This document shows, in pieces, positions 1,804 through 47,773 of a stretch of 64,000 nt of DNA (positions are counted from its first letter, which is position 1; each line of letters starts with the position of its first letter). The DNA is from Prasinococcaceae sp. CCMP 1430 (Eukaryota > Plantae > Prasinodermophyta). The notes beneath the pieces are model-generated. The model was given only the letters and a program-made list of their open reading frames with translations. It was not told the origin of the DNA and searched no databases. The position numbers were made by a program, and so were the translations under genes. The stretch lies in the NCBI GenBank assembly GCA_013416795.1, contig RQSC01000009.1:28648-92647 (forward strand), written 5' to 3'.

Positions 1804-3439
1804 TCGCCGCATTGTAACTTGTGTCTCATACGCGTGGCGGCCGCCGGTGCGTGCCCGACCGCCGCGTCTGCCGCCGCGCGGCCGCGCGGCTTCGCGCACG
1901 CAGCGCGCCGCTGTCACATCGCCCGCGAACGCGAAACGACGGGCGCCCCCATCAAAATGCAAAGAGATCAAAATGCAAAGAGTCGTTCGACCCAGCGGCC
2001 GTCGAGGACCGTTTCTGCCGGGTCCCTCTCGCCAATCTCCCATGGATCGATGGAGGCGCGGGATCGCGCGGCAGGTCCATGTTGAGGTGGGCGAGAGGGC
2101 CCCGAAACGCCCCTCGGCGGCGCCTGGATCGCAGCGAGCTGGATGTACTCGCCGCCCAAAAATTGCAACACCTCACATTTTGAGTCGAACACTAGTCGAA
2201 CACTAGCTAGTCCAGTTAATAGTAGGGGCGGCGAGGCTGCGACGACGAGCGAGGGGCGCGCGGCGCATAGTGCGCTCGTGCATCGTACTTGCTCTCGATT
2301 GTCGTCGGCGCGCGCGCTTGTTGTCGTCGTCGCGCGACGGTCAGTCGCCGCGCAGCAGCGCGAGCAGCCCGACGGCCTTGGCCTCTTGGTTGCCGCCGCC
2401 GAGCATGCGCTCGATGGCCGCCACGACGCCGGCCTGCGCGCGCACGGCGTCGCGCGCCTCGCGCCCCGCAGCGCGCCCGCCCCGCCGCTGCCAACGCCCG
2501 CGCCGCCGCTCCGGCGGGGCCCGCCAGCCACTCGGCCTGGTCCGCGGATTCCATGCTTACTCTGCGCAACCGCGCCGCGCCTATCGAATCCGCACGGTCT
2601 GAAGCTGCGTGTGTTCTGCTTGCGCGGAGCGCTGCGCCGCAGCAAAGCGCGCCTCCACCCTGACCGAATCCGTTCCCCCCGGCCCGGCGCCCGCAGGCGA
2701 GCGCTCGCGCTCATTTGTGTGCGCCATGCGCCCGGGCGGTTGCTTTGCTGCGCGCAGGCGCGGAGGTACGCTGGCAGCGGGGGGGGCGACCTGGCAGGAG
2801 TAGTGCCCCCGCGCCTCCAGCCCGCCTCCGGCCGCGGCCGCGACGGGGCCGCTGTGCCGCGCGCCTTCCGGCCACAGCCCGGGGCGCAACTTCCTACTAC
2901 TTCCGCCGCCAGCCAGCGGGGCGGGCGCATTCCTCCGCCCCCCCTGCCGCTGCGCCACGCTCGCGCCGCCCTGGCTGGCGTCGGTCGGGGAACGGACGCG
3001 GGCCCGAGCCCGGCGTCCTCCCCGCGCACACACCTGCCCCCCGCCCGCCCCTCCCCATTCTCTCACCTTGGCGCAGGCCCACGCAGGTGTGGACGGGGCC
3101 CCCGCGCACGTGATGGTGTTTTTGCGTCCCGACGTGCGTGCACGTCTGTGCGGCCGTCGTGGCACCTCGACCAGCCAGCTGGCAGCCGGGGTGGCGGCTG
3201 GCTGGCCTGGCTTTGGCTTGCCCGGCTGGACGGGGCGAAAAACGCGATTCGCCCGCGCGCGCTTTTCGTCCCTCCGCGATTGCGCGATTGTGCGCGCCCG
3301 CCCTTTTTGTGGCATTTCCCTTATCGGGATCGATCGCCCTCTGGCGAGATTTGCGGCTCGGGGGCGCCCCGCCGCGCGGGCCCGCCGTGGGGGCCGATTT
3401 TGATTCGCGCGCGGGCGCGGGAGCGCGCGGGAGCGCGCG

Positions 3440-4245
3440 NNNNNNNNNNNNNNNNNNNNNNNNNNNNNNNNNNNNNNNNNNNNNNNNNNNNNNNNNNNNN
3501 NNNNNNNNNNNNNNNNNNNNNNNNNNNNNNNNNNNNNNNNNNNNNNNNNNNNNNNNNNNNNNNNNNNNNNNNNNNNNNNNNNNNNNNNNNNNNNNNNNNN
3601 NNNNNNNNNNNNNNNNNNNNNNNNNNNNNNNNNNNNNNNNNNNNNNNNNNNNNNNNNNNNNNNNNNNNNNNNNNNNNNNNNNNNNNNNNNNNNNNNNNNN
3701 NNNNNNNNNNNNNNNNNNNNNNNNNNNNNNNNNNNNNNNNNNNNNNNNNNNNNNNNNNNNNNNNNNNNNNNNNNNNNNNNNNNNNNNNNNNNNNNNNNNN
3801 NNNNNNNNNNNNNNNNNNNNNNNNNNNNNNNNNNNNNNNNNNNNNNNNNNNNNNNNNNNNNNNNNNNNNNNNNNNNNNNNNNNNNNNNNNNNNNNNNNNN
3901 NNNNNNNNNNNNNNNNNNNNNNNNNNNNNNNNNNNNNNNNNNNNNNNNNNNNNNNNNNNNNNNNNNNNNNNNNNNNNNNNNNNNNNNNNNNNNNNNNNNN
4001 NNNNNNNNNNNNNNNNNNNNNNNNNNNNNNNNNNNNNNNNNNNNNNNNNNNNNNNNNNNNNNNNNNNNNNNNNNNNNNNNNNNNNNNNNNNNNNNNNNNN
4101 NNNNNNNNNNNNNNNNNNNNNNNNNNNNNNNNNNNNNNNNNNNNNNNNNNNNNNNNNNNNNNNNNNNNNNNNNNNNNNNNNNNNNNNNNNNNNNNNNNNN
4201 NNNNNNNNNNNNNNNNNNNNNNNNNNNNNNNNNNNNNNNNNNNNN
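3440..4245. other. Assembly gap (N run); probably hides the first exon of the GOGAT gene
   Basis: 806 N. The GOGAT ORF resumes after a branch point (GCTAAC, ~4287) and an acceptor AG at 4358-4359. Confidence 0.95.
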
Positions 4246-4359
4246 GACCGGCGCGGGCGCGCGCGCACCCTCGCCAGCCGCGCGCCGCTAACCCCGCCGC
4301 CGCCCGCGCACACAAACGCGAACGAACGAACGAACGGACGCGCGCGCCTCCGCGCGCAG

Positions 4360-5946
4360 CGCATCGAGAGCGCGGCGAACAATGTGGCCGACCTGGAGGA
4401 GATCCTCGCCGAGCGCGACGCGTGCGGCGTGGGCGTGGTCGCCAACCTCAAGAACGAGGCCAGCCACCGCGTGATCTCCGAGTCGCTGGCGGCGCTCGGC
4501 TGCATGGAGCACCGCGGCGCGTGCTCGGCCGACGACGACTCCGGCGACGGCGCCGGCGTCATGACGCAGGTGCCCTGGAAGCTGATCCAGAAGTGGGCGC
4601 GCGAGGCCGGCGTCGACGAGCCCAAGTCGGGCACCCACGGCGTGGGCATGGTGTTCCTGCCGAAGGACGACGAGGCGCGCGCCGCCGAGTACAAGGCGAT
4701 GCTCGAGGCGGGCGTGGAGGGCGCGGGCCTCAAGGTGGTCGGCTGGCGTCAGGTGCCCGTCGACCACGACGTGGTGGGCGAGTACGCGGCCATGACCGAG
4801 CCCGCGATCGAGCAGATCATCGTCGACGGCTGTGGCGCCGAGGGCGACGAGCTCGAGCGCAAGCTCTTCGAGGCACGCAAGCTGACCGAGCGCGCCGCGC
4901 GCGAGGCGCTCAAGGAAGGCGAGGACCCCAAGTCGTTCTACGTGTGCACGCTCTCCGGCCGCACCATCGTGTACAAGGGCATGCTCCGCTCCGTGGTGGT
5001 GGGCATGTACTTCAAGGACCTGGTGGACGAGGACTTCGAGACCTCCTTCGCCATCTACCACCGCCGCTTCTCCACCAACACAGTGCCCAAGTGGCCGCTG
5101 GCGCAGCCCATGCGCTTCCTCGGCCACAACGGCGAGATCAACACCGTGCAGGGCAACCTCAACTGGCTCACCGGCCGCGAGGCCAGCCTCGACCACCCGC
5201 TGTGGAAGGGCCGCGAGCACGTGCTGTCGGTCGTCGGCGACCCGGGCAACTCGGACTCGGCCAACCTTGACCGCATCGCCGAGGTGCTTGTGCGCACGGG
5301 CCGCGACCCCGAGGAGGCCATGATGATCTGCGTGCCCGAGGCGTACCGCAACCACCCGGAGCTGCAGGAGCAGTACCCCGACGTGGCCGACTTCTACGAG
5401 TTCTACAGCGGCGCGCAGGAGGCGTGGGATGGCCCCGCACTCATGGTGTTCTCCGACGGCAAGGCCGTCGGCGCCACGCTCGACCGCAACGGCCTGCGCC
5501 CGGCGCGTTTCTGGCAGACCGCCGACGACATGGTGTACATCGCGTCCGAGGTGGGCGTCATCCGCCAGGACCCGGCCAACACCATCTCCAAGGGCCGCCT
5601 CGGCCCGGGCCAGATGTTCTCCGTCAACCTCGAGACCGGCGTCGCGCGCCAGAACGCCGAGATCAAGAAGGACGTGGGTGGCAAGGCGCCGTACGCCGAG
5701 TGGCTGCAGTCGCGCCGCAACTACTCGGACGCGGCCTGGGAAGCGGAGGCGCCGGAGGACTCGGAGGTGCTCACGATGCAGACCATGTTCGGCTACGGCT
5801 CGGAGGACGTGCAGATGGTCATCGAGAGCATGGCCGCCGAGGGCAAGGAGCCCACGTTCTCCATGGGTGACGACATCCCGCTGGCGGTGCTCTCCTCGCA
5901 GCCGCACCTGCTGTACGACTACTTCAAGCAGCGCTTCGCGCAGGTG

Positions 5947-5977
<31 letters not shown>

Positions 5978-8900
5978 GCCTCGTGATGGGCCTGGACATG
6001 TGCCTCGGCGCTCGTGGCAACCTGCTCGAGCCCAGCTCGGAGCTCTGCTCCCAGGTGCACGTGGAGTCGCCGGTGGTCAACGAGGCCGAGCTGGAGAAGA
6101 TCAAGGCGGACGAGAAGCTCGGCGCCGTCACCATCCCCATCTTCTTCAAGAACGACGGCCCCGGCTCCATCAAGAAGGCGCTCGACGAGATCTGCGCCAC
6201 GGCCGCCGCCGCGGTTGAGGACGGTGCGCAGCTCATCGTGCTCTCCGACAAGCGGGCGTACGCCGACTACTCCGCGGACGAGGTGAACATCCCCGCGCTG
6301 CTCGCGTGTGGCGCAGTGCACCACCACCTCATCTCGAAGGGCCAGCGCGCGAGCACCTCCATCGCCGTGGAGACCGCGCAGGCGTTCTCGACGCACCACA
6401 TGGCGTGCCTCGTTGGCTACGGCGCGAGCGCCGTGTGCCCCTACCTGGCGCTCAGCACCTGCCGCTCGTGGTGGGCCTCGAGCAAGACGCAGTCGTTGAT
6501 GAAGCGCGGCAAGGTCCCGCAGATTGACATGGACGGGGCGCAGGAGAACTTCCGCAAGGCGCTCAACGCCGGCCTGAAGAAGATCCTGTCCAAGATGGGC
6601 ATCTCGCTGCTCTCGTCGTACCACGGCGCGCAGATTTTCGAGGCGTACGGCATCGGCGGCGACGCGCTCGATACGGGGTTCAGGGGCTCCGTCTCGCGCA
6701 TCGGCGGCATGTCGCTCGACGACATCGCCAGCGAGGCGGCGACCTTCTGGAACCGCGGCTTCACCGACGCGTCGGCCGACAAGTACAAGCTGCCCAACTT
6801 CGGCTTCATGATGACCCGCCCCAACGGCGAGTACCACGGCAACAACCCCGAGATGTCGAAGCTGCTGCACACGGCCGTGCGCGACGACTCCGCTACCGCG
6901 TACGAGACGTACGTGGACCACCTCGACAACCGCCCGACCAACGTCCTGCGCGACTGCCTCGACCTTAAGAGCGACGCCGCGCCGGTGCCCATCGACGAGG
7001 TCGAGTCGGTCGGCGACATCATGTCGCGCTTCTGCACGGGCGGCATGTCCCTCGGCGCCATCTCGCGCGAGTGCCACGAGGTGATTGCCGTGGCGATGAA
7101 CCGCCTGGGCGGCAAGTCCAACTCCGGCGAGGGCGGTGAGGACCCCATGCGCTACGTGCCGCTGGAGGACGCCTCGGAGGACGGCAAGTCGCCCTCGTTC
7201 CCGCACCTCAACGGCCTGAGGAACGGCGACGTGGCCACCAGCCGCATCAAGCAGGTGGCCTCCGGTCGCTTTGGCGTCACGCCCAACTTCCTGGTCAACG
7301 CCGACCAGCTCGAGATCAAGGTCGCGCAGGGCGCCAAGCCCGGAGAGGGCGGCCAGCTCCCGGGCAAGAAGGTGTCCCCGTACATCGCCATGCTGCGCCG
7401 CTCCAAGCCGGGCGTGCCGCTCATCTCGCCGCCGCCGCACCACGACATCTACTCCATCGAGGACCTCGCGCAGCTGATCTATGACCTGCACATGATCAAC
7501 AAGAACGCCAAGGTCAGCGTCAAGCTCGTGGCCGAGGCTGGCATCGGCACAGTCGCGAGCGGCGTGGCCAAGGCCGGCGCGGACATCATCCAGGTGTCTG
7601 GCCACGATGGCGGCACGGGCGCGTCGCCGGTGAGCTCGATCAAGCACTGCGGTGGCCCGTGGGAGATGGGCCTCACCGAGACGCACCAGACGCTGCTCGC
7701 AAACCAGCTGCGCGACCGTGTGATCGTCCGCGCGGACGGTGGCTTCAAGGGTGGCCGCGACGTGCTCGTCGCCGCTGCCATGGGCGCGGACGAGTACGGC
7801 TTCGGCACGATCGCAATGATCGCCACCGGCTGCATCATGGCGCGCATCTGCCACACCAACAACTGCCCCGTCGGCGTGGCTTCGCAGCGCGAGGAGCTGC
7901 GCGCGCGCTTCCCCGGCACGCCCGACGACGTGGTCAACTTCTTCCAGTTCGTGGGCGAGGAGGTGCGCGCCGGCCTGGCGGAGCTCGGCATGCGCAGCAT
8001 GGACGAGCTCATCGGCCGCAGTGACGTGCTGGTGCCTCGCAAGGACCTGGACCTTGCCAAGACGTCCGGCCTGGACGTGAGCTTCCTCACGCAGTACAAC
8101 GACGAGAAGCACTCGACCTCGTCGGAGCGCGTCGCCCAGCCGGCGCACGGCCTCGGTGACGTGATGGACGACGAGATCCTGGCAGACCCGGCCGTGCAGA
8201 AGGCCATCGAGACGGAGGGCGAGGTGACCGTGGTGAAGGACGTGTGCAACCTGGACCGCGCGTTCGGCGGGCGCATCGCGGGCGTGATCGCCAAGGATTA
8301 CGGCGACAACAGCTTCGCGGGCGCCGTCAACCTGGAGCTGACCGGCGCGGGCGGCCAGTCGTTCTGCGCGTGGTCGGTCGACGGCATGAACGTCACGCTG
8401 ACGGGCGAGGCCAACGACTACGTGTGCAAGGGCATGGCGGGCGGCGTCATCGCGATCAGGCCGGACCCGACGGCGCCGTTCAAGGCGGCCGACGCTTCCA
8501 TCATCGGCAACACGGCGCTGTACGGCGCCACGGGTGGCCACCTGTTCGCCGCCGGCCGCGCGGGCGAGCGATTCGCGGTCCGCAATTCGCTGGCGACCGC
8601 CGTGGTGGAGGGCACTGGCGACCACTGTCTCGAGTACATGACGGGTGGTTGCGTGGCGGTCATCGGCAGCGTGGGGCGCAACGTCGGCGCGGGCATGACG
8701 GGCGGCATTGGCTACTTCCTCGACGAGGACGGCACCTTCCTCGATCGCGTCAACGGCGAGATCGTCGAGGCGCAGCGCGTGGTGACGGCGGACGGCGAGG
8801 CGCAGCTCAAGGGCATGCTCGAGCAGCACGTGGCCAAGACGGGTTCGGTGCGCGCGCAGGAGCTGCTGGACAACTGGGCCGATGCGCTGCCCAAGTTCTG

Positions 8901-9006
8901 GCAGCTGGTGCCGCCGTCGGAGGCACAGACGCCCGAGGCGTCGCTCGAGTCCTCGAGCGCCTCCAGTCTCGCGCCCGAGCTCATTGGCGCGGGCGCCTCG
9001 GCGTGA
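4360..9006 (+). CDS. GLU1: Ferredoxin-dependent glutamate synthase (Fd-GOGAT), main exon; 5' exon missing in gap
   Basis: ERDACGVG (mature N-terminal Cys of the glutamine amidotransferase domain), [26 protein letters not shown] domain [18 protein letters not shown], 3Fe-4S motif [16 protein letters not shown]-terminal GXGXG beta-helix. No NADH small-subunit domain. Confidence 0.97.
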
Positions 9007-9341: not shown

Positions 9342-11252
9342 CTACGCGCCTTTTGTCTCCGGCACGAAGGCGAACACGTACGAGGTCGCCGCGAGGCAGA
9401 CGCACGAGAGCACCGTGAACGCCCCGGACACGCCACACGCAGTCATCAGCGGCAGGAAGTTCCTCCCCACTACGCTCACGCCCAGCCAGTTCGCGGCGGT
9501 GCACGCCGAGGCGGCCGTCGCGCGAATCTTGGCCGGGAACAACTCGGTGAACATCAGGTACGGCAGCGGGCCGGCGCCGCACGCGAAGAAGAACAGTGCC
9601 AAGGGCGCCACGGCGACGGCCACGAGAGGCGCGCCGACCGTCGACGCCACCGCGAGCGCGCCCATGCTCAAGGCCATGCCACCGAAGCTACCCATGAGGA
9701 GCGCCCGCCTGCCGAGCCTCTCTGTGAGGAACAGCGCGGTGATGCAGCCCAGTAGGTTCGCTGCGCCCGTCGCCAGGGCGGCCAGCTCGGGTGCGGCCAC
9801 ACCGACGTCCTTGAAGATGGTCGCGGTGAAGAAGACGAGCGAGTTGGCGCCAGACAGGGCCTGGAAGGCCGACAGGCCGATGCCCGTGAGCACCAGACGC
9901 CGGTACTTCGGATTCCGCAGGATGTCAACCAGGGTCGTCGATCCCGCCGTGGCGCTGGATTCCGCCTCCGCACACGCGCGAGCCTCATTGTCTGCGTCAA
10001 TGTGCGAGACGCCGCGGGTCTGGCGCAGCGTGCGGGCCGCCGCGGCGATCCGGCCGCGCCTGGCGAGCCACTGCGCCGTCTCGGGCGTCGTACCGAGCGA
10101 GGACATCGCCAGCGAGCTGGCGGCGAGGCCCGCGGCGAGCATGAAGATCGGCCTCCACCAGAACATCTCAAGACTGCCCAGCGCCATGGCTTGCGCGCCG
10201 TTGTGCGCGGCGGACTTGATGAGCGTGCCAGCGGACAGCGCCGAGACCTGGCCGATGACGAAGGCCGCGCGCGATGTGACCGCCAGCCGCGCGCGCATCG
10301 AGGGCGGAGCGAGCTCGCCCACGTACAGCGGCACCAGCATCGACGCGAGCCCTGAGCCCAGCCCCGTCATCAGGCGCCCCGCGGCGAACACCCCGACATC
10401 GGTGGCGGTGCCGCAGAGGGCCGCGCCCGAAGCGCAGATCAACAGCGACAGGCGGAGAGCGCCCGAGCGTCCGAGGGCCTCGGCAGCCGTGCCAGCGCAC
10501 ACCGCCCCCCAAAGGCCGCCGAAATCGTTCATGGTCACGACGAACAGCGGCAACGTGTTCGCGCACAGCCCGAAGGTGTTCCCGATGCACGAGAGCGGGA
10601 TGTTGATGCACGCGCCGAAGTAGCCAAACAACCAGCTGCCGACACACGCAATCGCGGCCGCGGCGCCCAGCGCCACCGTCAGGCGCCCGTCGCCTTCGGC
10701 GCCGGCAGCGCCGGCTTCGTCGGCGGCGGGCGAGTCCGAGACGAGCGCCGCGCCCAAATCGAGCTCCGGGAGCGGCCTTTCGGGAGGCGGCAGCGTCACC
10801 TCGAGAGTGGAGAGCTCGCGCGGCGCGATCCCTCCCCCTTGGACCCCTAGCGGATCGTATCCCTCCGCATCCGACCGTGCGCCATCCGCTGACAGCTGCA
10901 GCGGGTCATACGCCAGCGTGGCCTCGTCAGGAGCGCCGAGCGCCGTTTCCACGCCCGTCTGGGGGGCGATCGGGCCGGAGTTGCCGTACGGGTACACCTG
11001 CGCGGCCGGGGTGGCCACGAGCGGCTCGGTCTCGTCGTAGGGGTACAGCTGACCCCCCGCCGGGCCTGCCGTGTCCACGGTGTGGATGGCCGCGGCGGTC
11101 GCCGTTGCCTCTTCCGGGTACAGTCTATCCATCGCCGCGAGGTTGGTCTGGTGGGACGCCGGCGGCGCGACGGTCTCGGGAGCCACCGCCTCTCCCACCG
11201 CGTCGGGTGGCGTGGCGCCATCGCCGTCATCGAGCGGCGCTGGCGCCGCCAT
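9342..11252 (-). CDS. MFS sugar porter (plastid glucose transporter-like) with a long acidic N-terminal extension, 636 aa
   Basis: About 12 hydrophobic segments; motifs LGRSGALRL, GRLMTGLGSG, YVGELAPPSMRA, FQALSGANSLVFF, ERLGRRALL, ELFPAKIRA, VPETKG. ATG at 11252 is in frame with TAG at 9342. Confidence 0.9.
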   Translation of the reverse strand: MAAPAPLDDGDGATPPDAVGEAVAPETVAPPASHQTNLAAMDRLYPEEATATAAAIHTVDTAGPAGGQLYPYDETEPLVATPAAQVYPYGNSGPIAPQTGVETALGAPDEATLAYDPLQLSADGARSDAEGYDPLGVQGGGIAPRELSTLEVTLPPPERPLPELDLGAALVSDSPAADEAGAAGAEGDGRLTVALGAAAAIACVGSWLFGYFGACINIPLSCIGNTFGLCANTLPLFVVTMNDFGGLWGAVCAGTAAEALGRSGALRLSLLICASGAALCGTATDVGVFAAGRLMTGLGSGLASMLVPLYVGELAPPSMRARLAVTSRAAFVIGQVSALSAGTLIKSAAHNGAQAMALGSLEMFWWRPIFMLAAGLAASSLAMSSLGTTPETAQWLARRGRIAAAARTLRQTRGVSHIDADNEARACAEAESSATAGSTTLVDILRNPKYRRLVLTGIGLSAFQALSGANSLVFFTATIFKDVGVAAPELAALATGAANLLGCITALFLTERLGRRALLMGSFGGMALSMGALAVASTVGAPLVAVAVAPLALFFFACGAGPLPYLMFTELFPAKIRATAASACTAANWLGVSVVGRNFLPLMTACGVSGAFTVLSCVCLAATSYVFAFVPETKGA

Positions 11253-11353
11253 CCCGGGGCCCGCGGCGTCGACGGCGGTCGCGTTCCGCCTCCTGCTGGT
11301 GGCCCTCGAAGCAGCGAACCTGCCCCTGCGCGCGATGCGCGCACCGCGCGCGG

Positions 11354-11946
11354 NNNNNNNNNNNNNNNNNNNNNNNNNNNNNNNNNNNNNNNNNNNNNNN
11401 NNNNNNNNNNNNNNNNNNNNNNNNNNNNNNNNNNNNNNNNNNNNNNNNNNNNNNNNNNNNNNNNNNNNNNNNNNNNNNNNNNNNNNNNNNNNNNNNNNNN
11501 NNNNNNNNNNNNNNNNNNNNNNNNNNNNNNNNNNNNNNNNNNNNNNNNNNNNNNNNNNNNNNNNNNNNNNNNNNNNNNNNNNNNNNNNNNNNNNNNNNNN
11601 NNNNNNNNNNNNNNNNNNNNNNNNNNNNNNNNNNNNNNNNNNNNNNNNNNNNNNNNNNNNNNNNNNNNNNNNNNNNNNNNNNNNNNNNNNNNNNNNNNNN
11701 NNNNNNNNNNNNNNNNNNNNNNNNNNNNNNNNNNNNNNNNNNNNNNNNNNNNNNNNNNNNNNNNNNNNNNNNNNNNNNNNNNNNNNNNNNNNNNNNNNNN
11801 NNNNNNNNNNNNNNNNNNNNNNNNNNNNNNNNNNNNNNNNNNNNNNNNNNNNNNNNNNNNNNNNNNNNNNNNNNNNNNNNNNNNNNNNNNNNNNNNNNNN
11901 NNNNNNNNNNNNNNNNNNNNNNNNNNNNNNNNNNNNNNNNNNNNNN
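11354..11946. other. Assembly gap (N run)
   Basis: 593 N followed by a poly-A tract. Confidence 0.95.
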
Positions 11947-12645
11947 GGAAAAAAAAAAAAAAAAAACGCAGAGCACTTTCGATTCGGAAGCGGGCCTTTT
12001 CCTTTTCGCCCCTTTTCGTTTTCGCGCGGGGCTCCGTCCGAAAACCCGAACCGTTCCGCCGCGTGCCGGGGCCGACGCCCGCCGCGCGGCGGCAGCGAAA
12101 TATCCGCCCCCGCGGCGGGAGCGGGCGCAACGTCGAATATCGAGTAAACAAGCGACGGGAAAGGCATCCAGCCAGCATTTTGTGTCGAACCCTGATTTGC
12201 GAAGGGGGGTGAGAGAAACCCATACTCGGGCGTTTGGAAAAAACAGCGGGTCGGAAGCGCGCGCGTTCGCCCCCGCGGCGAAGCGGGCTTCGGTCGGTCG
12301 GTTGGGACGGTGTCCAGCCGGCCAGGCGCCGCCTGCGCTTCCTTGGGCTCGGATCCGTGCGTGGGCCCGGGCGCGCGCGGGAGCGCGCCGCGCGCGCGCC
12401 GCCGGACAAGGCCGCCGACCCGGAAGTGCCGGCGCCCCGGCCGGGCAGTGCCCGACCGAGAAATCGGCGTGGCAAATCTGAGCGCGCGACTGGCCGACCA
12501 ACCAACCACGGGCTCAACCCACCGAGAGTACCTTCACCCGCCATGCGGCCCGGGCTGCGACGATCGATCAGACCTCCGCCCGGCCGGATCGGGGTGTGGT
12601 GTGCCCCTTCGGTTTTCGCCCGCCTTCGCACGTGGTGGATTCCGC

Positions 12646-37255: not shown

Positions 37256-40098
37256 ATGGGGTGGCAGGCGATCGAGCGCGCTGGCGTGCTCGATGACGGG
37301 CGGCCGTGCGAGTACCGATACGACGCGACAGGGCGCGGCGGCTCGGCGCTGCGCGGCCGATGGATGCCGGGAGTCGTGCGCGGCCGCATGGAGGACGGCG
37401 CGTTCGTCATCGAGGTGCGTGCGCTGCGCTGAACGCTCGTGCGATCGTGCGATTCACGGACTCTGTGGACGCCCCTGTTCCGCCCTTCAGCAGGAACGCT
37501 CGCTCTGCGCCGACCCAAGAGAGCTCACGCGCGCTTTGGACACACGCCCCCCACCCCACCCCGCCCCAACACACACACGCAAACTCCCTCCCTCCTCGCT
37601 CTCTTGCAGGGTCGCACGGTCCTCGAGGACCGGCCGGTGGTCGTCGCGCCGTTTCGCGTGCGGCCGGCGCCGCCAGCGGCTGCGCGCACCGGCGCGCAGC
37701 CGCGGCCGCTCGACCAGTACGCGATCGGGGAGGCCGTCGATGTCGCCTCGGGCGGCGCATGGGTAGAGTGCTATGTCGTGAGCTTCGAGTCGACCTCCTG
37801 CCGGGATGCGCGTGCGCGATCGTCGAAACAGGCGAAGGGGCAAGCACCGACTGCCAAGCCAGCGAACGCCCGCGCGCGCACACGCACTCGCATGCGCCGG
37901 GGTCCCTCGTCTGCAGCGGCCGCGGCGTCGACGTCCGTGCCTGCACCGCACGGCACGCTCCATCTGGCGACCCGATGGGGTTCCAAGTCCAAGCCAATGC
38001 AGGCACGCGATGCGCGTTTCGTGCGCGCGTCACTCGAATGGGTGGCAAGCGACTGGGCGGTCGCGCCGCCGAAGGAAGTGCAAGAGGCTGAAGCGGGCGA
38101 CTGCAGCGGCAGCGCCGACTGCGGAGGCAACGAAGGCGCAGGCAGTGGCCCGCGCCGTGCACCGCCGCTGCGCTCGAGCGCGCGCGTCGACGCCTTCTAC
38201 CGTTTTCTTTACGAGCGTCACGCGGCCTGGGAGCGTCGCGCGCGTGGCTTGCCGCCGCCGTGGACAGACGACCCCATCCTGCACTCCTTCCGTTTCTGCA
38301 ACATATTCAGAGAGCTCGACACGGGGACCAAATACTTCGCGCAGGAGGTTGCGCGCCAGCGCGCGCGCGCGAGCGCATCCGGATCCACGCTCCAGCTGGC
38401 CGACCTGGTGTTCATGACGGTGGCTTATCGCCTATTGAATCGCGTGGAGACCTTCGCAGACTCGCCCACGGGCGTGCCCACGCGCGCAGAATGGCCCGCG
38501 CTGCGAAAGTGGCTGCAAGAGGAGTACCGGCGCTCCAAGGGCGCCTCCTCCGCAGCCCAGCGCAAATTTGGGACGGGAGCGCACCAGACCGTGGGCCTGC
38601 CTATCTACGTACGGCACATGAACACCAAGGCTGCCGAGATCGAGGTGCTCTTGCGAGAATGTGGCGAACACGCGAATGGGCATGCGGCAACGTCCGAGGC
38701 GGAAACAGAAGTGTCGGAAGAGGCGGAGACGGGGCTTTCTGAAGAGGCGGAGACGGAGGTGTCAGCTGAGATGGACGCCGGCGCGCAGGTCGGACCGCGA
38801 GGCGCGCAGGCGACGCGACAGCCCCTCTCAACGGAGGGCTGGACTGACGCCCTGCAAACGCTTGCCGGCGTGGGGCCATTCTTCGCGTGGCAGTGCTGCT
38901 GTGACCTGCAAGAGGCCGGCGTGGCGCCACGCGATGCGCTGTACGCCCGCCTGGGCAACGGCGCCTGCGCGGGCCTCCTCTGCGTGTACCCACGCGAGAA
39001 AGAAAACGCGCGCAGTGCTGCTGAGGGTGCCACTGCGCTGCTTCCCGCGCTTTTGAGGTTGCAGGCACAACGCGAGGCGAGCTACGCGCGCATGGGGCTG
39101 GAGGCACCCACATGGGAGGGGCAGGAGCTCGAGGCAAAGGAGATCGAGCACACGCTGTGCGAGTATGCAAAGTATACGCGCATGAGCGCCGCAGGTGATC
39201 ACTCACGCATGCTCAAATACGTGCCGAACGGCATGCCGGCGCCCTTTGGCGAAAGAAAGGGCGACGAGGAGCTCGTCGCGAGGCAGAGAGGCGGTAGCAG
39301 CGACGAGGACGAGGGCTGCACGAAATGTGATGGGCACGACGCCGATGGTAGAAGGGCCAAGGTCAAGGACCAAAGTGCGGCTGATGGACTCGCGGTTGTG
39401 CAGCTCATGGTGGAAACATGCACGCCTATTGCTCTTGCGGCGCGCCTCGCGCAGCTCGCGGGAGACAACGACGGTGAAGAAGGCCTGGACGATGACGTGC
39501 CCCTGCCCGAGGCCGCACGGGAGGTGGTACGTCGGTTGGTCCTGCGCCGCGTGGCCGCCAGTCAGCGCGGGGGTGGAGGTTCGCGGGGCCTCACCCAGTA
39601 CGTTGAGGGGCGCGGGTGCTCGAAGTGCCGCTACTCGCCAGCGGGCTGCATCAATTGCAAGACGCGCGCGCAGGCATACCTTGTCGCATTGGAGGAGATT
39701 CGTGCACGCAACGACGAGCTGAGCGAGGAGGAGCTGCACGCGCGTGCTCACGCGCTCGGCTGGGCACACTCGTTGGGCGGCTGGCTCACTCCTCAAGAGG
39801 CACAGACACCCGCAGGACAGCGCAAGATTCGCAGCGCGCAGGCCAAGGTGCGTGCGTGCACTCGCGCGCGCGCTCCTCTCGTGCGCAGTGGGTGCTGGCT
39901 GCCCGCAGAGGCAGTGAAGGGCCAGAGCGCTGCCAATGTATGCGCGCAGACATGCTAACGCGGAAGCAAATGCGCATGCACCCACGCGCGTGCGCACCGC
40001 AGCACGAGGCGGCCAGACAAAAGCGCGATGCTGGCGTTGAGGTCAAGGCGGAGGCAGGCGAGGATGGCCATGTGAAGAAGCCAAAGCTCAGCACATAG
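37256..40098 (+). CDS. Protein with Tudor/Agenet-like N-terminal repeats, an aGPT-Pplase1 / 5-hmdU DNA kinase helical-type domain and a Cys-rich tail; exons 37256-37414, 37610-39847, 40003-40098; ~830 aa
   Basis: FYRFLYERHAAWERRARGLPPPWTDDPILHSFRFCNIFRELD; YRLLNRVETF; HhH-like LAGVGPFFAWQCCCDL; LGNGACAGL; IEHTLCEYAKY. All three exons join in phase 0 with GT-AG borders and branch points. Confidence 0.8.
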
Positions 40099-42614: not shown

Positions 42615-44295
42615 TCCCCCCCCCCCTTCCCCCCCCTTCTCGCCCACCTCGCCTGCAATCTGCGTTTCGACTGAGCGCTGCGCGCGCCCAGTGGCGCCCC
42701 CGCCCGCGGAGGCGGGGGGCGGGGACGCCGGTACCGCCGACGCCGGCGCCCCTGGCTAGGGCCCAGCCAGCGGCGCCGCTGCGGGGCGCGAATCGGATCG
42801 GGGAACCGTCCGTCGTACGGACAGGTTCGAAACGTGTGCGCGCGCGAATGGCGGGAAGGGACGTTCCGGACTTTTTACCTTTACAGTAGTACTACCGTCG
42901 GTACGTACAGTGCTGCGTCACGCACGACACCTCCGCCCTGCTCCATGATCAGTGTCGGGAAAACCTCCAGTCGGCCCTGAGTCGGGCGTGCGGTACCGGA
43001 GGGTCGAGCACGACGATAATGGCAGCGAATGGAAGGGGCTCTGTTCCCCATGCGTCACTCGGTGTCGTCCTTGGCGCACTTTGCGGAGGTGGCAAGGCGG
43101 TCGAGCGTCTGCGCAGTGGCCTTGTACGGAGCTACAGCTGGATACTTCTCCTCAAGCGCTTTCAGGCGCGAGTCGATAGAGATCTGTGTCCGCTCGCGCA
43201 GAGATGGGCACAGTCGGGGCGCAGCCAAGTCTGTCAGCTCGGCGCGTACATACTCGCGCGCGACAGACTCAGAACCGAGAAAAAGCGCTGGCCTCGGGCC
43301 GCTGGCTGGACGTCACGCGCGCGGAGGCCGGCTGCTAGCACTTACGATGCGGTGCATCTCTTCGTGAACATTGTCGTGCGGGCACGGAGCACCCTCGGAC
43401 CCGTTGGTTGCCGCGGGCAGCTCCCCATCAATCTCGTCGCGGATGGCCTGGAGCTGTGCCGCGGCGTTGCTCACGTCGCAGCGGCGGACGCACCCTTCCT
43501 CGGCGCGCGCGAGCAAGCGCTCGATCTCCAAGAGCTTGCGCACCCGCTCGCCCGCGGGCTCGCCCGCGGCCTCGGCCGGTGCCACCGCCGGCACAGCCGC
43601 CATGCGCCTCCCAATTTTTGTGGCGCCCGCCCGCGCACTGTACAGCAGCCCCCCCAAGGCTCCGCTGCGCACCACCTCCTGGCGCCCCCGTCCACGGCGG
43701 CGCTGCGCCGCGCGCGCGCGCGCGCGCTCGGGGCCACGCGGAGGGCGCGCGGTGTGGCGCGGCAGCCACCTCCCGCGGGCAGCGATGCCTCCCTCGCCGC
43801 AGCTCCGCGGGCCGCCTCTGTCAACCCGTTGGAGGACGCCCTGCCCGCACTGCGCAGCACGCGACGGGAGTCGCTTCCCGACGGCGACACAACGTTGTCA
43901 TCAATGTCTAAAAAAATATCAAATGTACCAACGGGAAAGTGCATGCGGCAGCCGCCGAGCGCCTCGCGCGCAGAGTCAGCGCCGCCGCGCTGCAGCTGCG
44001 GGCAGCGTCTCAACCCAAACCTCCCCTCTGTGGATTCGGGAATATCGAATGTATTTGTATTTCAAGTACAGAACCTAAATAGAATAAACCCTATATTTTG
44101 CGGGTGTTGGCGTCCGATGGTCAGGCAGGTCGCCGCAGCGCGCGCGCTGATTTTTAAAAGTCTCCCGTGGTTTAATGTGATATGAGACGGAATATGACAT
44201 ATCGGACGGTCCCAGCGCGCGCGCGCCGCCCCCTCGGCCCCTCGGCGGTTACGCGTGCGGGCGCCGCGGCCACACCGCGCGGTCCTCGCGGGTGT
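42615..44295 (+). repeat. Copy 1 of a ~1.7-kb direct duplication (1681 bp)
   Basis: Matches 45248-46988 wherever compared, at offset 2633, then offset 2693 after a 60-bp indel. Confidence 0.95.
43055..43603 (-). CDS. Small hypothetical helical protein (~128 aa), copy 1; exons 43603-43346 and 43183-43055
   Basis: ATG, strong GTAAGT donor, GCTGAC branch point, CAG acceptor, phase-0 join. MAAVPAVAP...EEMHRI then ISIDSRLKALEEKYP...KDDTE. Confidence 0.6.
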
Positions 44296-45246
44296 GGGCC
44301 GCGGCCGGCCCCCCCCCGTGTCCCCGGGGAGCGCGGGGGAGGGACAAGGCAAAGGGAGAGGCCACGCGGCCAGGCGGCATGTACCGCTGGATGGTCTCCT
44401 CCGCCACCGCATCCATCCTCGCACCGACCGACCACGTCTGCTGCTCGGGCGAGTACTTGGTCATGGGGCACAGGCTGCTCGGATCGGTGGCCGCCATGCC
44501 ACCGACCGTGTACACCACGCCGCGCAGGCGCGCGCTGGCGCCGTACGAGCGGCTCGAGCCCATGTCCGGCAGCTCGGTCCAGCTCGAGGGCATGCGCAGG
44601 TCGAGGCACTCGACCTTGCTAATGGGCTGGGTGCCGTCAAATCCGCCCGCGACAATGATCGCATCCTCGCCCGTGACGCCGGCGCTGCCGGGAAGGAGCG
44701 AAGATGCGCAGGTGTGCCCTCCGCGCTTGAACAGCAGCGGCGGGCCGGGCTGCCACTTGCCGACGCGGGGATCCAAGAACTCGCATGTGTTGAGGTAGCG
44801 CTTGCCGTCGAAGCCGGCCAAGGCCCACACACATCCGCGCGAGGCGACCATGCTGCTAGCGAAGCGTGTCTCACTCATGTTGCTGGCCCACACCCACTCA
44901 GCCGCCCCCGGTTGCAGGACCTCACAGGACGACAGCAGCTGAGTTTTTTTGGAGCCGCCACCGGCGGCCACGATGGTGCCATCGTCGAGAGCGGCTGCAA
45001 CGCCGGAAAATCGAGTGTCAAGCAATGATGGCGCCTCCACCCACACGTTGTTGATCATATCATAGCGCTCGACCGAGTTGTACCACCTCATTTTCTTGCC
45101 GCCGCCGATCGCGTAGACGCCCAGCCCGTTGCGCGCGTTCACAAGTCCAAAATTCGAGCGCTCGAACGCCATCGGGGCGACCTCCTCGGCGAATCCAGTC
45201 GATGGGTCAACAATAGCAACCTTGTTGGTTGTCCCGTGCTTGGTAA
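44249..45246 (-). CDS. Kelch-repeat protein, 5'-truncated at the single N
   Basis: Repeated GG...Y/W Kelch blades (VYAIGGG...VERYDMINNVW; WALAGFDG...CEFLDPRVGKW; IVAGGFDG...VECLD). Its stop codon lies inside duplication copy 1. Confidence 0.85.
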
Positions 45247-45247
45247 N

Positions 45248-46988
45248 TCCCCCCCCCCCTTCCCCCCCCTTCTCGCCCACCTCGCCTGCAATCTGCGTTT
45301 CGACTGAGCGCTGCGCGCGCCCAGTGGCGCCCCCGCCCGCGGAGGCGGGGGGCGGGGACGCCGGTACCGCCGACGCCGGCGCCCCTGGCTAGGGCCCAGC
45401 CAGCGGCGCCGCTGCGGGGCGCGAATCGGATCGGGGAACCGTCCGTCGTACGGACAGGTTCGAAACGTGTGCGCGCGCGAATGGCGGGAAGGGACGTTCC
45501 GGACTTTTTACCTTTACAGTAGTACTACCGTCGGTACGTACAGTGCTGCGTCACGCACGACACCTCCGCCCTGCTCCATGATCAGTGTCGGGAAAACCTC
45601 CAGTCGGCCCTGAGTCGGGCGTGCGGTACCGGAGGGTCGAGCACGACGATAATGGCAGCGAATGGAAGGGGCTCTGTTCCCCATGCGTCACTCGGTGTCG
45701 TCCTTGGCGCACTTTGCGGAGGTGGCAAGGCGGTCGAGCGTCTGCGCAGTGGCCTTGTACGGAGCTACAGCTGGATACTTCTCCTCAAGCGCTTTCAGGC
45801 GCGAGTCGATAGAGATCTGTGTCCGCTCGCGCAGAGATGGGCACAGTCGGGGCGCAGCCAAGTCTGTCAGCTCGGCGCGTACATACTCGCGCGCGACAGA
45901 CTCAGAACCGAGAAAAAGCGCTGGCCTCGGGCCGCTGGCTGGACGTCACGCGCGCGGAGGCCGGCTGCTAGCACTTACGATGCGGTGCATCTCTTCGTGA
46001 ACATTGTCGTGCGGGCACGGAGCACCCTCGGACCCGTTGGTTGCCGCGGGCAGCTCCCCATCAATCTCGTCGCGGATGGCCTGGAGCTGTGCCGCGGCGT
46101 TGCTCACGTCGCAGCGGCGGACGCACCCTTCCTCGGCGCGCGCGAGCAAGCGCTCGATCTCCAAGAGCTTGCGCACCCGCTCGCCCGCGGGCTCGCCCGC
46201 GGCCTCGGCCGGTGCCACCGCCGGCACAGCCGCCATGCGCCTCCCAATTTTTGTGGCGCCCGCCCGCGCACTGTACAGCAGCCCCCCCAAGGCTCCGCTG
46301 CGCACCACCTCCTGGCGCCCCCGTCCACGGCGGCGCTGCGCCGCGCGCGCGCGCGCGCGCTCGGCGGACACGCGCCTTGACGTCTATGCCGCTGACGTGG
46401 CCAAACGCGCGCGCGCGCGCTCGGGGCCACGCGGAGGGCGCGCGGTGTGGCGCGGCAGCCACCTCCCGCGGGCAGCGATGCCTCCCTCGCCGCAGCTCCG
46501 CGGGCCGCCTCTGTCAACCCGTTGGAGGACGCCCTGCCCGCACTGCGCAGCACGCGACGGGAGTCGCTTCCCGACGGCGACACAACGTTGTCATCAATGT
46601 CTAAAAAAATATCAAATGTACCAACGGGAAAGTGCATGCGGCAGCCGCCGAGCGCCTCGCGCGCAGAGTCAGCGCCGCCGCGCTGCAGCTGCGGGCAGCG
46701 TCTCAACCCAAACCTCCCCTCTGTGGATTCGGGAATATCGAATGTATTTGTATTTCAAGTACAGAACCTAAATAGAATAAACCCTATATTTTGCGGGTGT
46801 TGGCGTCCGATGGTCAGGCAGGTCGCCGCAGCGCGCGCGCTGATTTTTAAAAGTCTCCCGTGGTTTAATGTGATATGAGACGGAATATGACATATCGGAC
46901 GGTCCCAGCGCGCGCGCGCCGCCCCCTCGGCCCCTCGGCGGTTACGCGTGCGGGCGCCGCGGCCACACCGCGCGGTCCTCGCGGGTGT
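45248..46988 (+). repeat. Copy 2 of the ~1.7-kb duplication (1741 bp, includes an extra 60 bp at 46365-46424)
   Basis: Starts immediately after the single N at 45247; same sequence as 42615-44295. Confidence 0.95.
45688..46236 (-). CDS. Small hypothetical helical protein, copy 2
   Basis: Same sequence as 43055-43603 at offset 2633. Confidence 0.6.
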
Positions 46989-47773
46989 AGGGGGTGGCGG
47001 CGAAGGCGGGGGCGGCAGCGGCGGAGGATGCCGCGCCGAAGCGCGTGCTCGTCGCCGGGGCGACCGGCGCGACGGGCCGCCTCGTCGTGAAGGAGCTGGC
47101 AGCGCAGGGCTACGACGTAGTGGCGGGCATCCGCTCGGAGGAGAAGGCGCGCGACACGGGCGTCGCCGCATTGGCGAACGAGCTGACCCAGCTCGACGTG
47201 ACCAACGCGCCCGACGCCATCGCCGCGGGGCTGCCAAAGGGCATTGACGCGATCGTGTGCGCGACCGGCTTCGTCCCCGGCAACCCTTTCAAGATGGGCG
47301 CAGCGGCGCACGCGGTTGACAACGTGGGGACCCGCAACCTGATCGCGGCTGCTTCCCTCGCGGGTATCGACCGCTTCGTTCTCGTCAGCTCGATCCTCAC
47401 CAACGGCCGCGCGATTGGCCAAGAGAAGTCGCCAGGCTTTGTCATTACCAATGCCTTCGGCGGCGTGCTCGACGAGAAGCTGGAGGCGGAAAACGCGCTG
47501 CGCGCCAGCGGCCTCAGCTACACCATCGTGAGGCCTGGAGGCCTCAAGGACGAGGTCACCTCGCCGGACGTCATCGTCGCTGAGGAGGACTCGCTGTACA
47601 GCGGTGAGGTGTCGCGCGCCAACGTGGCTGCAGTGTGCGTCGAGGCGCTCGGTGCCACTTCAAGTGTCAACAGCACTGTCGAGGTTGTTGAGTTTGGCAC
47701 GTGCCTCGACAATCAGTGCCCGGGCGCCGAGGGCAAGACGGGCTCGCAAGACCGCGCGCAGTGGTTCGCGTAG
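46887..47773 (+). CDS. NAD(P)-binding Rossmann-fold (atypical SDR, TIC62-like) plastid protein; 5' junction unresolved
   Basis: VLVAGATGATGRLVV, AVDNVGTRNLI, RFVLVSSIL, YTIVRPGGL, VSRANVAAVCVEAL. A transit-peptide-like frame starts at ATG 46887 but is out of frame with the body. Confidence 0.85.

Follow-up and report, generated by a model that had tools for sequence, protein, structure and literature searches.

What is a protein domain from the DNA-hypermodification systems of bacteriophages doing in a gene of a marine alga? In phages, hypermodification of thymidine shields the DNA from restriction, and to our knowledge this chemistry has been worked out only there. The question is raised by a 64,000-nucleotide stretch of DNA from Prasinococcaceae sp. 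CCMP 1430 (contig RQSC01000009.1), referred to here as the window, in which positions 37256-40098 of the forward strand form a gene of three exons with a spliced product of 830 amino acids (aa) and one stop codon, which is terminal. This product is an intact clade-1 aGPT-Pplase domain protein. We lean towards reading it as a chromatin-associated enzyme that modifies pyrimidines in DNA.

The domain spans residues 245-579 (38183..39187, + strand), where Pfam, PHROG and tblastn searches and a structural model identify a member of PF18723 (aGPT-Pplase clade 1, also HMUDK_hel) with an all-helical fold of the helix-hairpin-helix (HhH) glycosylase type. A preliminary description of the locus had assigned this segment to the aGPT-Pplase1 family from a series of motifs. 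A hidden Markov model (HMM) search bears the assignment out, with a match to PF18723 at an E-value of 9.6e-36 and 124 bits against a cut-off of 25, over nearly the full length of the profile (positions 3-275 of 281). The domain also matches PHROG 2396, a family without known function (E 7e-39), and a scan of NCBIfam gave no match for the window protein. When used as a tblastn query, the core domain retrieves 281 phage records, among them ViI-like phages of Salmonella and Escherichia, M6/YuA-like phages of Pseudomonas, Vibrio phages, and phiRSL1. An exhaustive HMMER search retrieves 2592 relatives at E ≤ 1e-3.

Conservation was judged on an alignment of 149 of these 2592 relatives. All 17 invariant or near-invariant columns hold the consensus residue in the window protein (F249, R256, F282, N284, R287, D290, T293, R327, N330, G475, F477, D485, G502, G504, E566, C570, and E571 in full-length numbering), and the family's set of conserved motifs, FCN..RELD.GT, R..N, G.G.F...D, G.G, and E...CE, is complete. 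The first motif, FCN.FRELD.GT (38294..38329, +), contributes F282, N284, R287, D290, and T293, while the HhH hairpin, GVGPFF and then Asp485 (aa 473-485; 38867..38905, +), contributes the near-invariant G475, F477, and D485. In BLASTP, the hairpin segment aligns with GFGPWIGFK..D of gp51 from phage M6. The motif series from which the family was first recognized (ERH...PPPWTDDPIL..F.FCN..RELD, RLLN, GVGPFFAWQ...DL, and EHTLCEY.KY) is present in full and in place, as are the flanking strings GRWMPGVV, YAIGEAVDVASGGAWVECYVV, GCSKCRYSPAGCINC, and the terminal KKPK. Because the consensus residue is found at every invariant or near-invariant family column, this motif series is real and diagnostic.

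AlphaFold predicts an all-helical core domain with a predicted local distance difference test (pLDDT) score above 90 and one disordered acidic insert. This repetitive insert within the catalytic domain (aa 408-448; 38672..38794, +; pLDDT <50) is built of imperfect repeats of the SEEAET type and sits between conserved helices; in the closest ortholog, P0002 from a TARA ocean scaffold (58% identity), it is shorter and different. A Foldseek search of the PDB gave no match at E ≤ 1e-3, and the fold emerged only with a second aligner, in an unbiased search of 48,161 representative chains. The first-ranked structure was the 5-PmdU glycinyltransferase gp46 of phage PaMx11 (8z2m), with a Z score of 9.6 and a root-mean-square deviation of 4.2 Å over 208 residues. 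Ranks 2 to 25 all belong to the HhH superfamily (Z 9.5 to 4.2), with matches to QNG1, NTHL1, Mag1, EndoIII, OGG, AlkA, MutY, ROS1, and MBD4, and the unrelated chains that come after rank 25 have Z scores of 4.1 or less. Models of viral clade-1 proteins match with E-values from 3e-8 to 7e-4, those of phiRSL1, PhiW-14, and SP10 falling between 3e-8 and 2e-6. Sequence searches of the PDB with the whole protein and with the family profile returned nothing useful. Judged by the predicted model, the fold of the core domain is that of the HhH DNA glycosylases, and the amino-acid:DNA transferases of phages are paralogues of the domain.

The putative active site is the motif E566-H567-T-L-C570-E571 (39146..39163, +), in which the two glutamates and the cysteine are near-invariant in the family. 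E566 and C570 align with E243 and C247 of the clade-2 transferases (E243-T244-x-x-C247 in M6 gp51 and PaMx11 gp46) by BLASTP (E 0.04), by hhalign (E 0.015), and in the structural superposition, where both cysteines lie nine residues before the last aligned residue. In gp46, Cys247 acts as the nucleophile at C6 of the pyrimidine, and a metal ion is held by Glu243 and Thr244 (PMC11472151). Mutating the cysteine or the glutamate abolishes the activity of M6 gp51 and of ViI gp247, and the covalent intermediate of gp51 with DNA was trapped with thiol or borohydride (PMC8989533). The hallmark of clade 2, a catalytic cysteine with a glutamate four residues upstream, is found in the window protein as E566/C570. 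PF18724, the Pfam family of clade 2, gave no match at E ≤ 1, the PF18723 family profile does not retrieve 8z2m from the PDB, and no clade-2 homolog was found within the 64-kb window. Because clades 1 and 2 are only marginally similar in sequence, the equivalence of their active sites rests on the short motif and the structural superposition. Taken singly, each of the three lines of alignment is weak; in combination, they point to a likely use of the same covalent cysteine chemistry by clade 1. The domain has the amino-acid:DNA transferases as paralogues and retains the Cys/Glu motif of their catalysis, so that modification of bases is a plausible role by analogy.

In the mechanism that we envisage, the domain would bind double-stranded DNA through its hairpin and receive in its pocket a flipped pyrimidine with a substituent at C5, of the 5-hydroxymethyl type and possibly activated. 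Cys570 would attack C6 while Glu566 and His567 hold a metal ion or a proton, and an exocyclic methylene intermediate would then allow the C5 side group to be exchanged or removed, a route demonstrated for clade 2. Attachment of the enzyme to chromatin or DNA is probably the task of the conserved blocks at the N-terminus and of a four-cysteine module at the C-terminus; in other algal relatives, Tudor, PHD, chromo, and MBD domains hold this position. We infer that a modified base exists, and likewise what the substrate is, how it is converted, and how the enzyme is targeted.

The fold would also suit an eraser. Such an enzyme, glycosylase-like or Cys-dependent, would excise or strip a 5-hydroxymethyl-type pyrimidine during repair or the turnover of epigenetic marks; loss of the C5 group, for instance, would leave U/C or T. 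The HhH DNA glycosylases that share this fold include the demethylase ROS1 and MBD4, a near-invariant aspartate (Asp485) follows the hairpin, one homolog carries an MBD domain, and the window holds no activating kinase. However, the closest structure is a transferase and not a glycosylase, and the conserved Cys/Glu motif is typical of the transferase clade. On this evidence we consider an eraser fairly unlikely.

The proposal of a chromatin-associated enzyme that modifies pyrimidines draws on the eukaryotic relatives of the domain. Scattered eukaryotic members of the family had been mentioned in the preliminary description, and such members were identified in the diatoms Epithemia clementina (KAL7557719.1) and Chaetoceros neogracilis and in the pelagophyte Chrysophaeum taylorii (KAJ8614561.1). 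Two of these named proteins are encoded on eukaryotic contigs of 240-285 kb, and many other members are marine metagenome proteins. In a domain survey of 46 homologs of at least 400 aa, PF18723 was found in 46 of 46, with a Tudor domain of the PTM/DIR17 type in 14, PHD in seven, chromo in two, MBD in one, and a BAHCC1-type Tudor in one. In a quick FastTree tree of the domain, whose long branches mean that placements should be read with caution, one clade of 58 (support 97) holds nearly all of the long and Tudor- or PHD-bearing proteins, and the window protein pairs with P0002 on long branches apart from it, outside that clade and inside a larger one of 82 (support 96). This clade of 82 does not include the four named phage proteins. 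In 2013, chlorophytes and stramenopile algae were reportedly predicted by Iyer et al. to have systems of this kind. Basidiomycete homologs of these phage enzymes have also been mentioned (Lee et al, 2018), and a full-text literature search found no paper joining the enzyme name with eukaryotes and chromatin. Because eukaryotic homologs of these phage enzymes were noted earlier, the gene is not a categorical novelty. As judged from its sequence, it is a further member of a known, computationally predicted eukaryotic group, with flanking modules that appear to be lineage-specific.

The earlier proposal of a chromatin-guided enzyme therefore stands in part: reader fusions occur across the eukaryotic family, but none passes the tests in the window protein itself. 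Two N-terminal segments had been labeled as Tudor/Agenet-like. Segment 1 (aa 18-75; 37307..37675, +) spans intron 1, resembles Agenet by pattern only, and has a pLDDT of 33. Segment 2 (aa 88-208; 37712..38074, +) contains an Ala/Arg-rich low-complexity insert at aa 116-167, in place of which the ortholog has a Gly/Lys-rich sequence between flanking blocks that are kept. Both segments are conserved block-wise between the two orthologs. The Tudor/Agenet label was not confirmed by profile searches of the window protein: Pfam gave no match even at E ≤ 10 for the N-terminal pieces, which were scanned separately; a profile made from the Tudor domains of 21 homologs found no match in the window protein; and the N-terminal profile had no match in the PDB. 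A Tudor profile seeded on the C-terminal Tudor of the ortholog recruited no other sequences. For the N-terminal region of the window protein and of the ortholog, AlphaFold, working from an alignment of only two sequences, predicts almost no strands (pLDDT 33-40). The sole positive sign of Agenet is segment 1 of the ortholog, at 14.9 bits (E 0.038) and below the cut-off of 27.

On the C-terminal side of the core domain, the protein has a four-cysteine knuckle, C723-x2-C726-x6-C733-x2-C736 (GCSKCRYSPAGCINC; 39617..39658, +). All four cysteines are kept in P0002, where the last spacing is longer by one residue; the knuckle has no Pfam match, and no other protein with this region was found. The C-terminal module (39647..39847, +), which is kept in P0002, is predicted as two helices, a β hairpin (GWAHSLGGW), and a further helix with a pLDDT of 75-87. 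It has no Pfam match at E ≤ 10, a word-based search returned only the same protein, and the best matches in a structural search reached a Z score of 3.9 or less and pointed to no known fold. The KKPK tail would suit import into the nucleus, a guess made from its composition. The ortholog P0002 ends in a PTM/DIR17 Tudor that is barely above the Pfam cut-off (28.0 vs 27.2 bits); the window protein is without this domain, and there is no space for a further exon before the next gene.

Several points weigh against a chromatin-associated pyrimidine-modifying enzyme. We know of no clade-1 enzyme with a demonstrated activity. No reader domain is demonstrable within the window protein with Pfam, the homolog Tudor profile, the PDB profile, or AlphaFold. 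The 64-kb window holds no kinase, hydroxymethylase, or dioxygenase partner, and no DNA-modification genes lie beside three eukaryotic homologs. The sequence similarity of clade 1 to clade 2 is marginal at the BLASTP and hhalign E-values given above, with no HMM match, and a Z score of 9-10 for an all-helical model is only moderate by the aligner's own caveat. Finally, M6 gp55, a clade-1 protein, is not needed for the formation of glycinyl-thymidine in vitro (PMC8989533).

The dispensability of clade 1 in the in vitro reconstitution of the phage pathway would fit an accessory role. The preliminary description had itself offered the alternative of a reader of modified bases. Such a domain would be non-catalytic, and would only recognize the modified base in its flipped state and bring in other factors. 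We regard this as unlikely, given that phage, bacterial, and eukaryotic members alike retain all near-invariant polar residues, including the cysteine and the glutamate, a pattern typical of a working active site. Alternatively, the protein could act on free nucleosides or nucleotides and not on DNA, in the manner of the queuosine-salvage hydrolase QNG1, as structures of QNG1/DUF2419 nearly equal gp46 in the structural search (Z 9.0-9.5). Such an activity is quite improbable for a protein that Pfam assigns firmly to PF18723 and not to DUF2419, that retains the HhH hairpin, and whose family fusions are with chromatin and DNA readers.

The current Pfam name of PF18723, HMUDK_hel or '5-hmdU DNA kinase, helical domain' (5-hmdU, 5-hydroxymethyldeoxyuridine), suggests that the window protein is a 5-hmdU DNA kinase. 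This family name and the UniProt-derived names of the viral models are all that speaks for a kinase. The kinase identity was rejected, as a Walker A motif is missing from the protein and Pfam matches it neither to PF18748 nor to another P-loop family; a tblastn search with the M6 kinase gp54 found no match in the 64-kb window. In phage M6, the kinase gp54 is a P-loop protein (PF18748), its neighbor gp55 is the PF18723 protein, and gp51 is an amino-acid:DNA transferase (PF18724). In phage SP10, an N-terminal kinase and a C-terminal clade-1 domain are fused in gp186 (PMC5889632), which UniProt names '5-hmdU DNA kinase', and gp186 without its C-terminal PF18723 part still phosphorylates 5-hmdU DNA (PMC8989533). 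This fusion is the likely source of the Pfam name. Because M6 has its kinase and its PF18723 domain in two different proteins, gp54 and gp55 (L003:11686-13229), the automatic kinase annotations of stand-alone PF18723 members are probably wrong. The algal protein is likewise not expected to be a kinase, because the kinase is a separate P-loop domain that is absent from it. The earlier claim that the domain belongs to the kinases that activate 5-hmdU was thus misleading, and we give a kinase very little credence.

Clade-1 genes of phages have neighbors in the 5-hmdU pathway. M6 gp55 adjoins the kinase gene gp54, and ORF231 of the Ralstonia phage phiRSL1, also of clade 1, lies between a sulfotransferase-like gene and a gene for a dUMP hydroxymethyltransferase. 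No P-loop kinase is annotated within the 6.4-kb stretch of phiRSL1 that contains ORF232-ORF230 (L005:2055-5069). To judge from these gene contents, the hydroxymethyl group in phiRSL1 might be activated by sulfation instead of phosphorylation.

A phage-type domain could point to contaminating DNA from a phage or bacterium or to a dead relic, but these readings are virtually excluded by two spliceosomal-type introns, a GC content that matches the window, eukaryotic flanking genes, synteny with a TARA strain at 98% identity, and an intact frame with mostly synonymous change. For the same reasons, the sequence identifies a resident nuclear gene under purifying selection. The intron-containing structure proposed at the outset is supported by the GTGCGT...CAG boundaries, by colinearity with P0002, and by the divergence of intron and exons from the TARA strain. 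Exon 1 (37256..37414, +; aa 1-53) begins at the ATG at 37256, contains the GRWMPGVV segment, and is open in the spliced translation; it differs from the TARA strain by one synonymous change, and its GRW..GVVRG block is also in frame at the ortholog locus L001. Intron 1 (37415..37609, +; 195 nucleotides; GTGCGT...TTGCAG) contains an in-frame stop at 37430-37432, and P0002 is colinear across the junction. Exon 2 (37610..39847, +; aa 54-799) is an open reading frame that encodes most of the protein, with 99% identity to the protein P0001 and 58% to P0002. Intron 2 (39848..40002, +; 155 nucleotides; GTGCGT...CCGCAG) is predicted from the sequence, and its junction, with K on one side and HEAARQKRD on the other, lines up with KVAADKRKR of P0002. 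Exon 3 (40003..40098, +; aa 800-830) encodes a basic tail with KKPK at 40075-40086 and ends in the stop codon TAG. Both introns start with GTGCGT and end with CAG, and P0002, the closest ortholog, is colinear across both exon junctions.

The TARA strain locus (L002) is 98% identical across 7 kb, with the neighboring genes conserved. Substitutions amount to 5 of 195 nucleotides in intron 1 and 11 of 2493 nucleotides in the exons (0.44%). Seven of the 11 exon changes are synonymous, and the four replacements all fall in low-complexity inserts and none in conserved blocks; one of them, at aa 406, is immediately upstream of the acidic insert of the catalytic domain. In the ortholog locus (L001:1-400), the first intron is at another position, with an AG acceptor immediately before the SRALLGRW block. 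Because the region of the window's intron 1 is continuous coding sequence in L001, intron positions differ between the window and ortholog lineages.

The GC content of the window is 65-74% except in two low-GC islands, and the gene matches the window. These islands (~50-52%), at window positions 2001-4000 and 10001-12000, overlap very long open reading frames on both strands (2143-9006, +; 9342-12509, -). The neighboring genes are ordinary eukaryotic ones and encode a SAC-domain phosphatase, a DAGAT, and a flavodoxin/FAD reductase. A segment of ~1.7 kb is present twice in the window (42615-44378 and 45248-46990), the copies being identical (100%) over stretches of at least 300 nucleotides. Positions 5429-7102 of the TARA contig L002 match both copies, and the arrangement looks like a recent local duplication on the downstream side of the SAC-domain gene.

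The presence of this superfamily in algal nuclear genes, its intact catalytic motif, and its repeated fusion to histone and DNA readers suggest that pyrimidines in chromatin are chemically elaborated in certain abundant marine algae. A bolder version of this idea is that an undiscovered hypermodified pyrimidine occurs in the nuclear DNA of the alga and of the diatoms and pelagophytes that have Tudor- or PHD-fused relatives. PF18723 enzymes recruited to particular states of chromatin would make it from a hydroxymethylated base. We think this unlikely, but if true it would be a new epigenetic mark in eukaryotes, with a chemistry that goes back to DNA hypermodification in phages. An intact thymine-modification domain of phage type is encoded in the nucleus of this high-GC marine alga, and its presence hints at a DNA base modification that has yet to be discovered. 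Provided that the alga is in culture, the gene would be a concrete subject for nucleoside mass spectrometry and enzyme assays.

The window protein can be compared with several known systems. With the HhH glycosylases (EndoIII/NTHL1, OGG, AlkA/Mag1, MutY, ROS1, and MBD4) and QNG1 it shares the helical two-lobe fold and the HhH hairpin (Z 5.5-9.5) but no sequence similarity, and the conserved Cys/Glu motif is not a feature of glycosylases. With the clade-2 transferases (PF18724, 'ADDT'; PaMx11 gp46/PUGT in 8z2m, M6 gp51, and ViI gp247) it has in common both the HhH hairpin and the E-x-x-x-C motif, whereas there is no HMM-level sequence match and the window protein has a histidine in place of the threonine beside the glutamate. 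The phage clade-1 proteins (M6 gp55, ViI gp160 and its relatives, PhiW-14 gp72, phiRSL1 ORF231, and the C-terminal half of SP10 gp186) share PF18723 itself, the conserved motifs, and the predicted fold, with M6 gp55 aligning to the window domain at a BLASTP E-value of 7e-14 and 33-34% identity in the conserved blocks. These phage proteins are about 300-400 aa long, stand alone or are fused to a kinase, and lie beside genes of the 5-hmdU pathway. In contrast, the algal protein is 830 aa long, with further modules on both sides of the domain and an acidic, disordered insert, and its gene has introns and no pathway neighbors. Relative to the eukaryotic PF18723 reader fusions, the window protein and its ortholog sit on a separate long branch, and their own modules are without detectable relatives. 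Nevertheless, they belong to the same large clade as these fusions and, like them, combine the catalytic domain in a nuclear gene with presumed chromatin-targeting modules.

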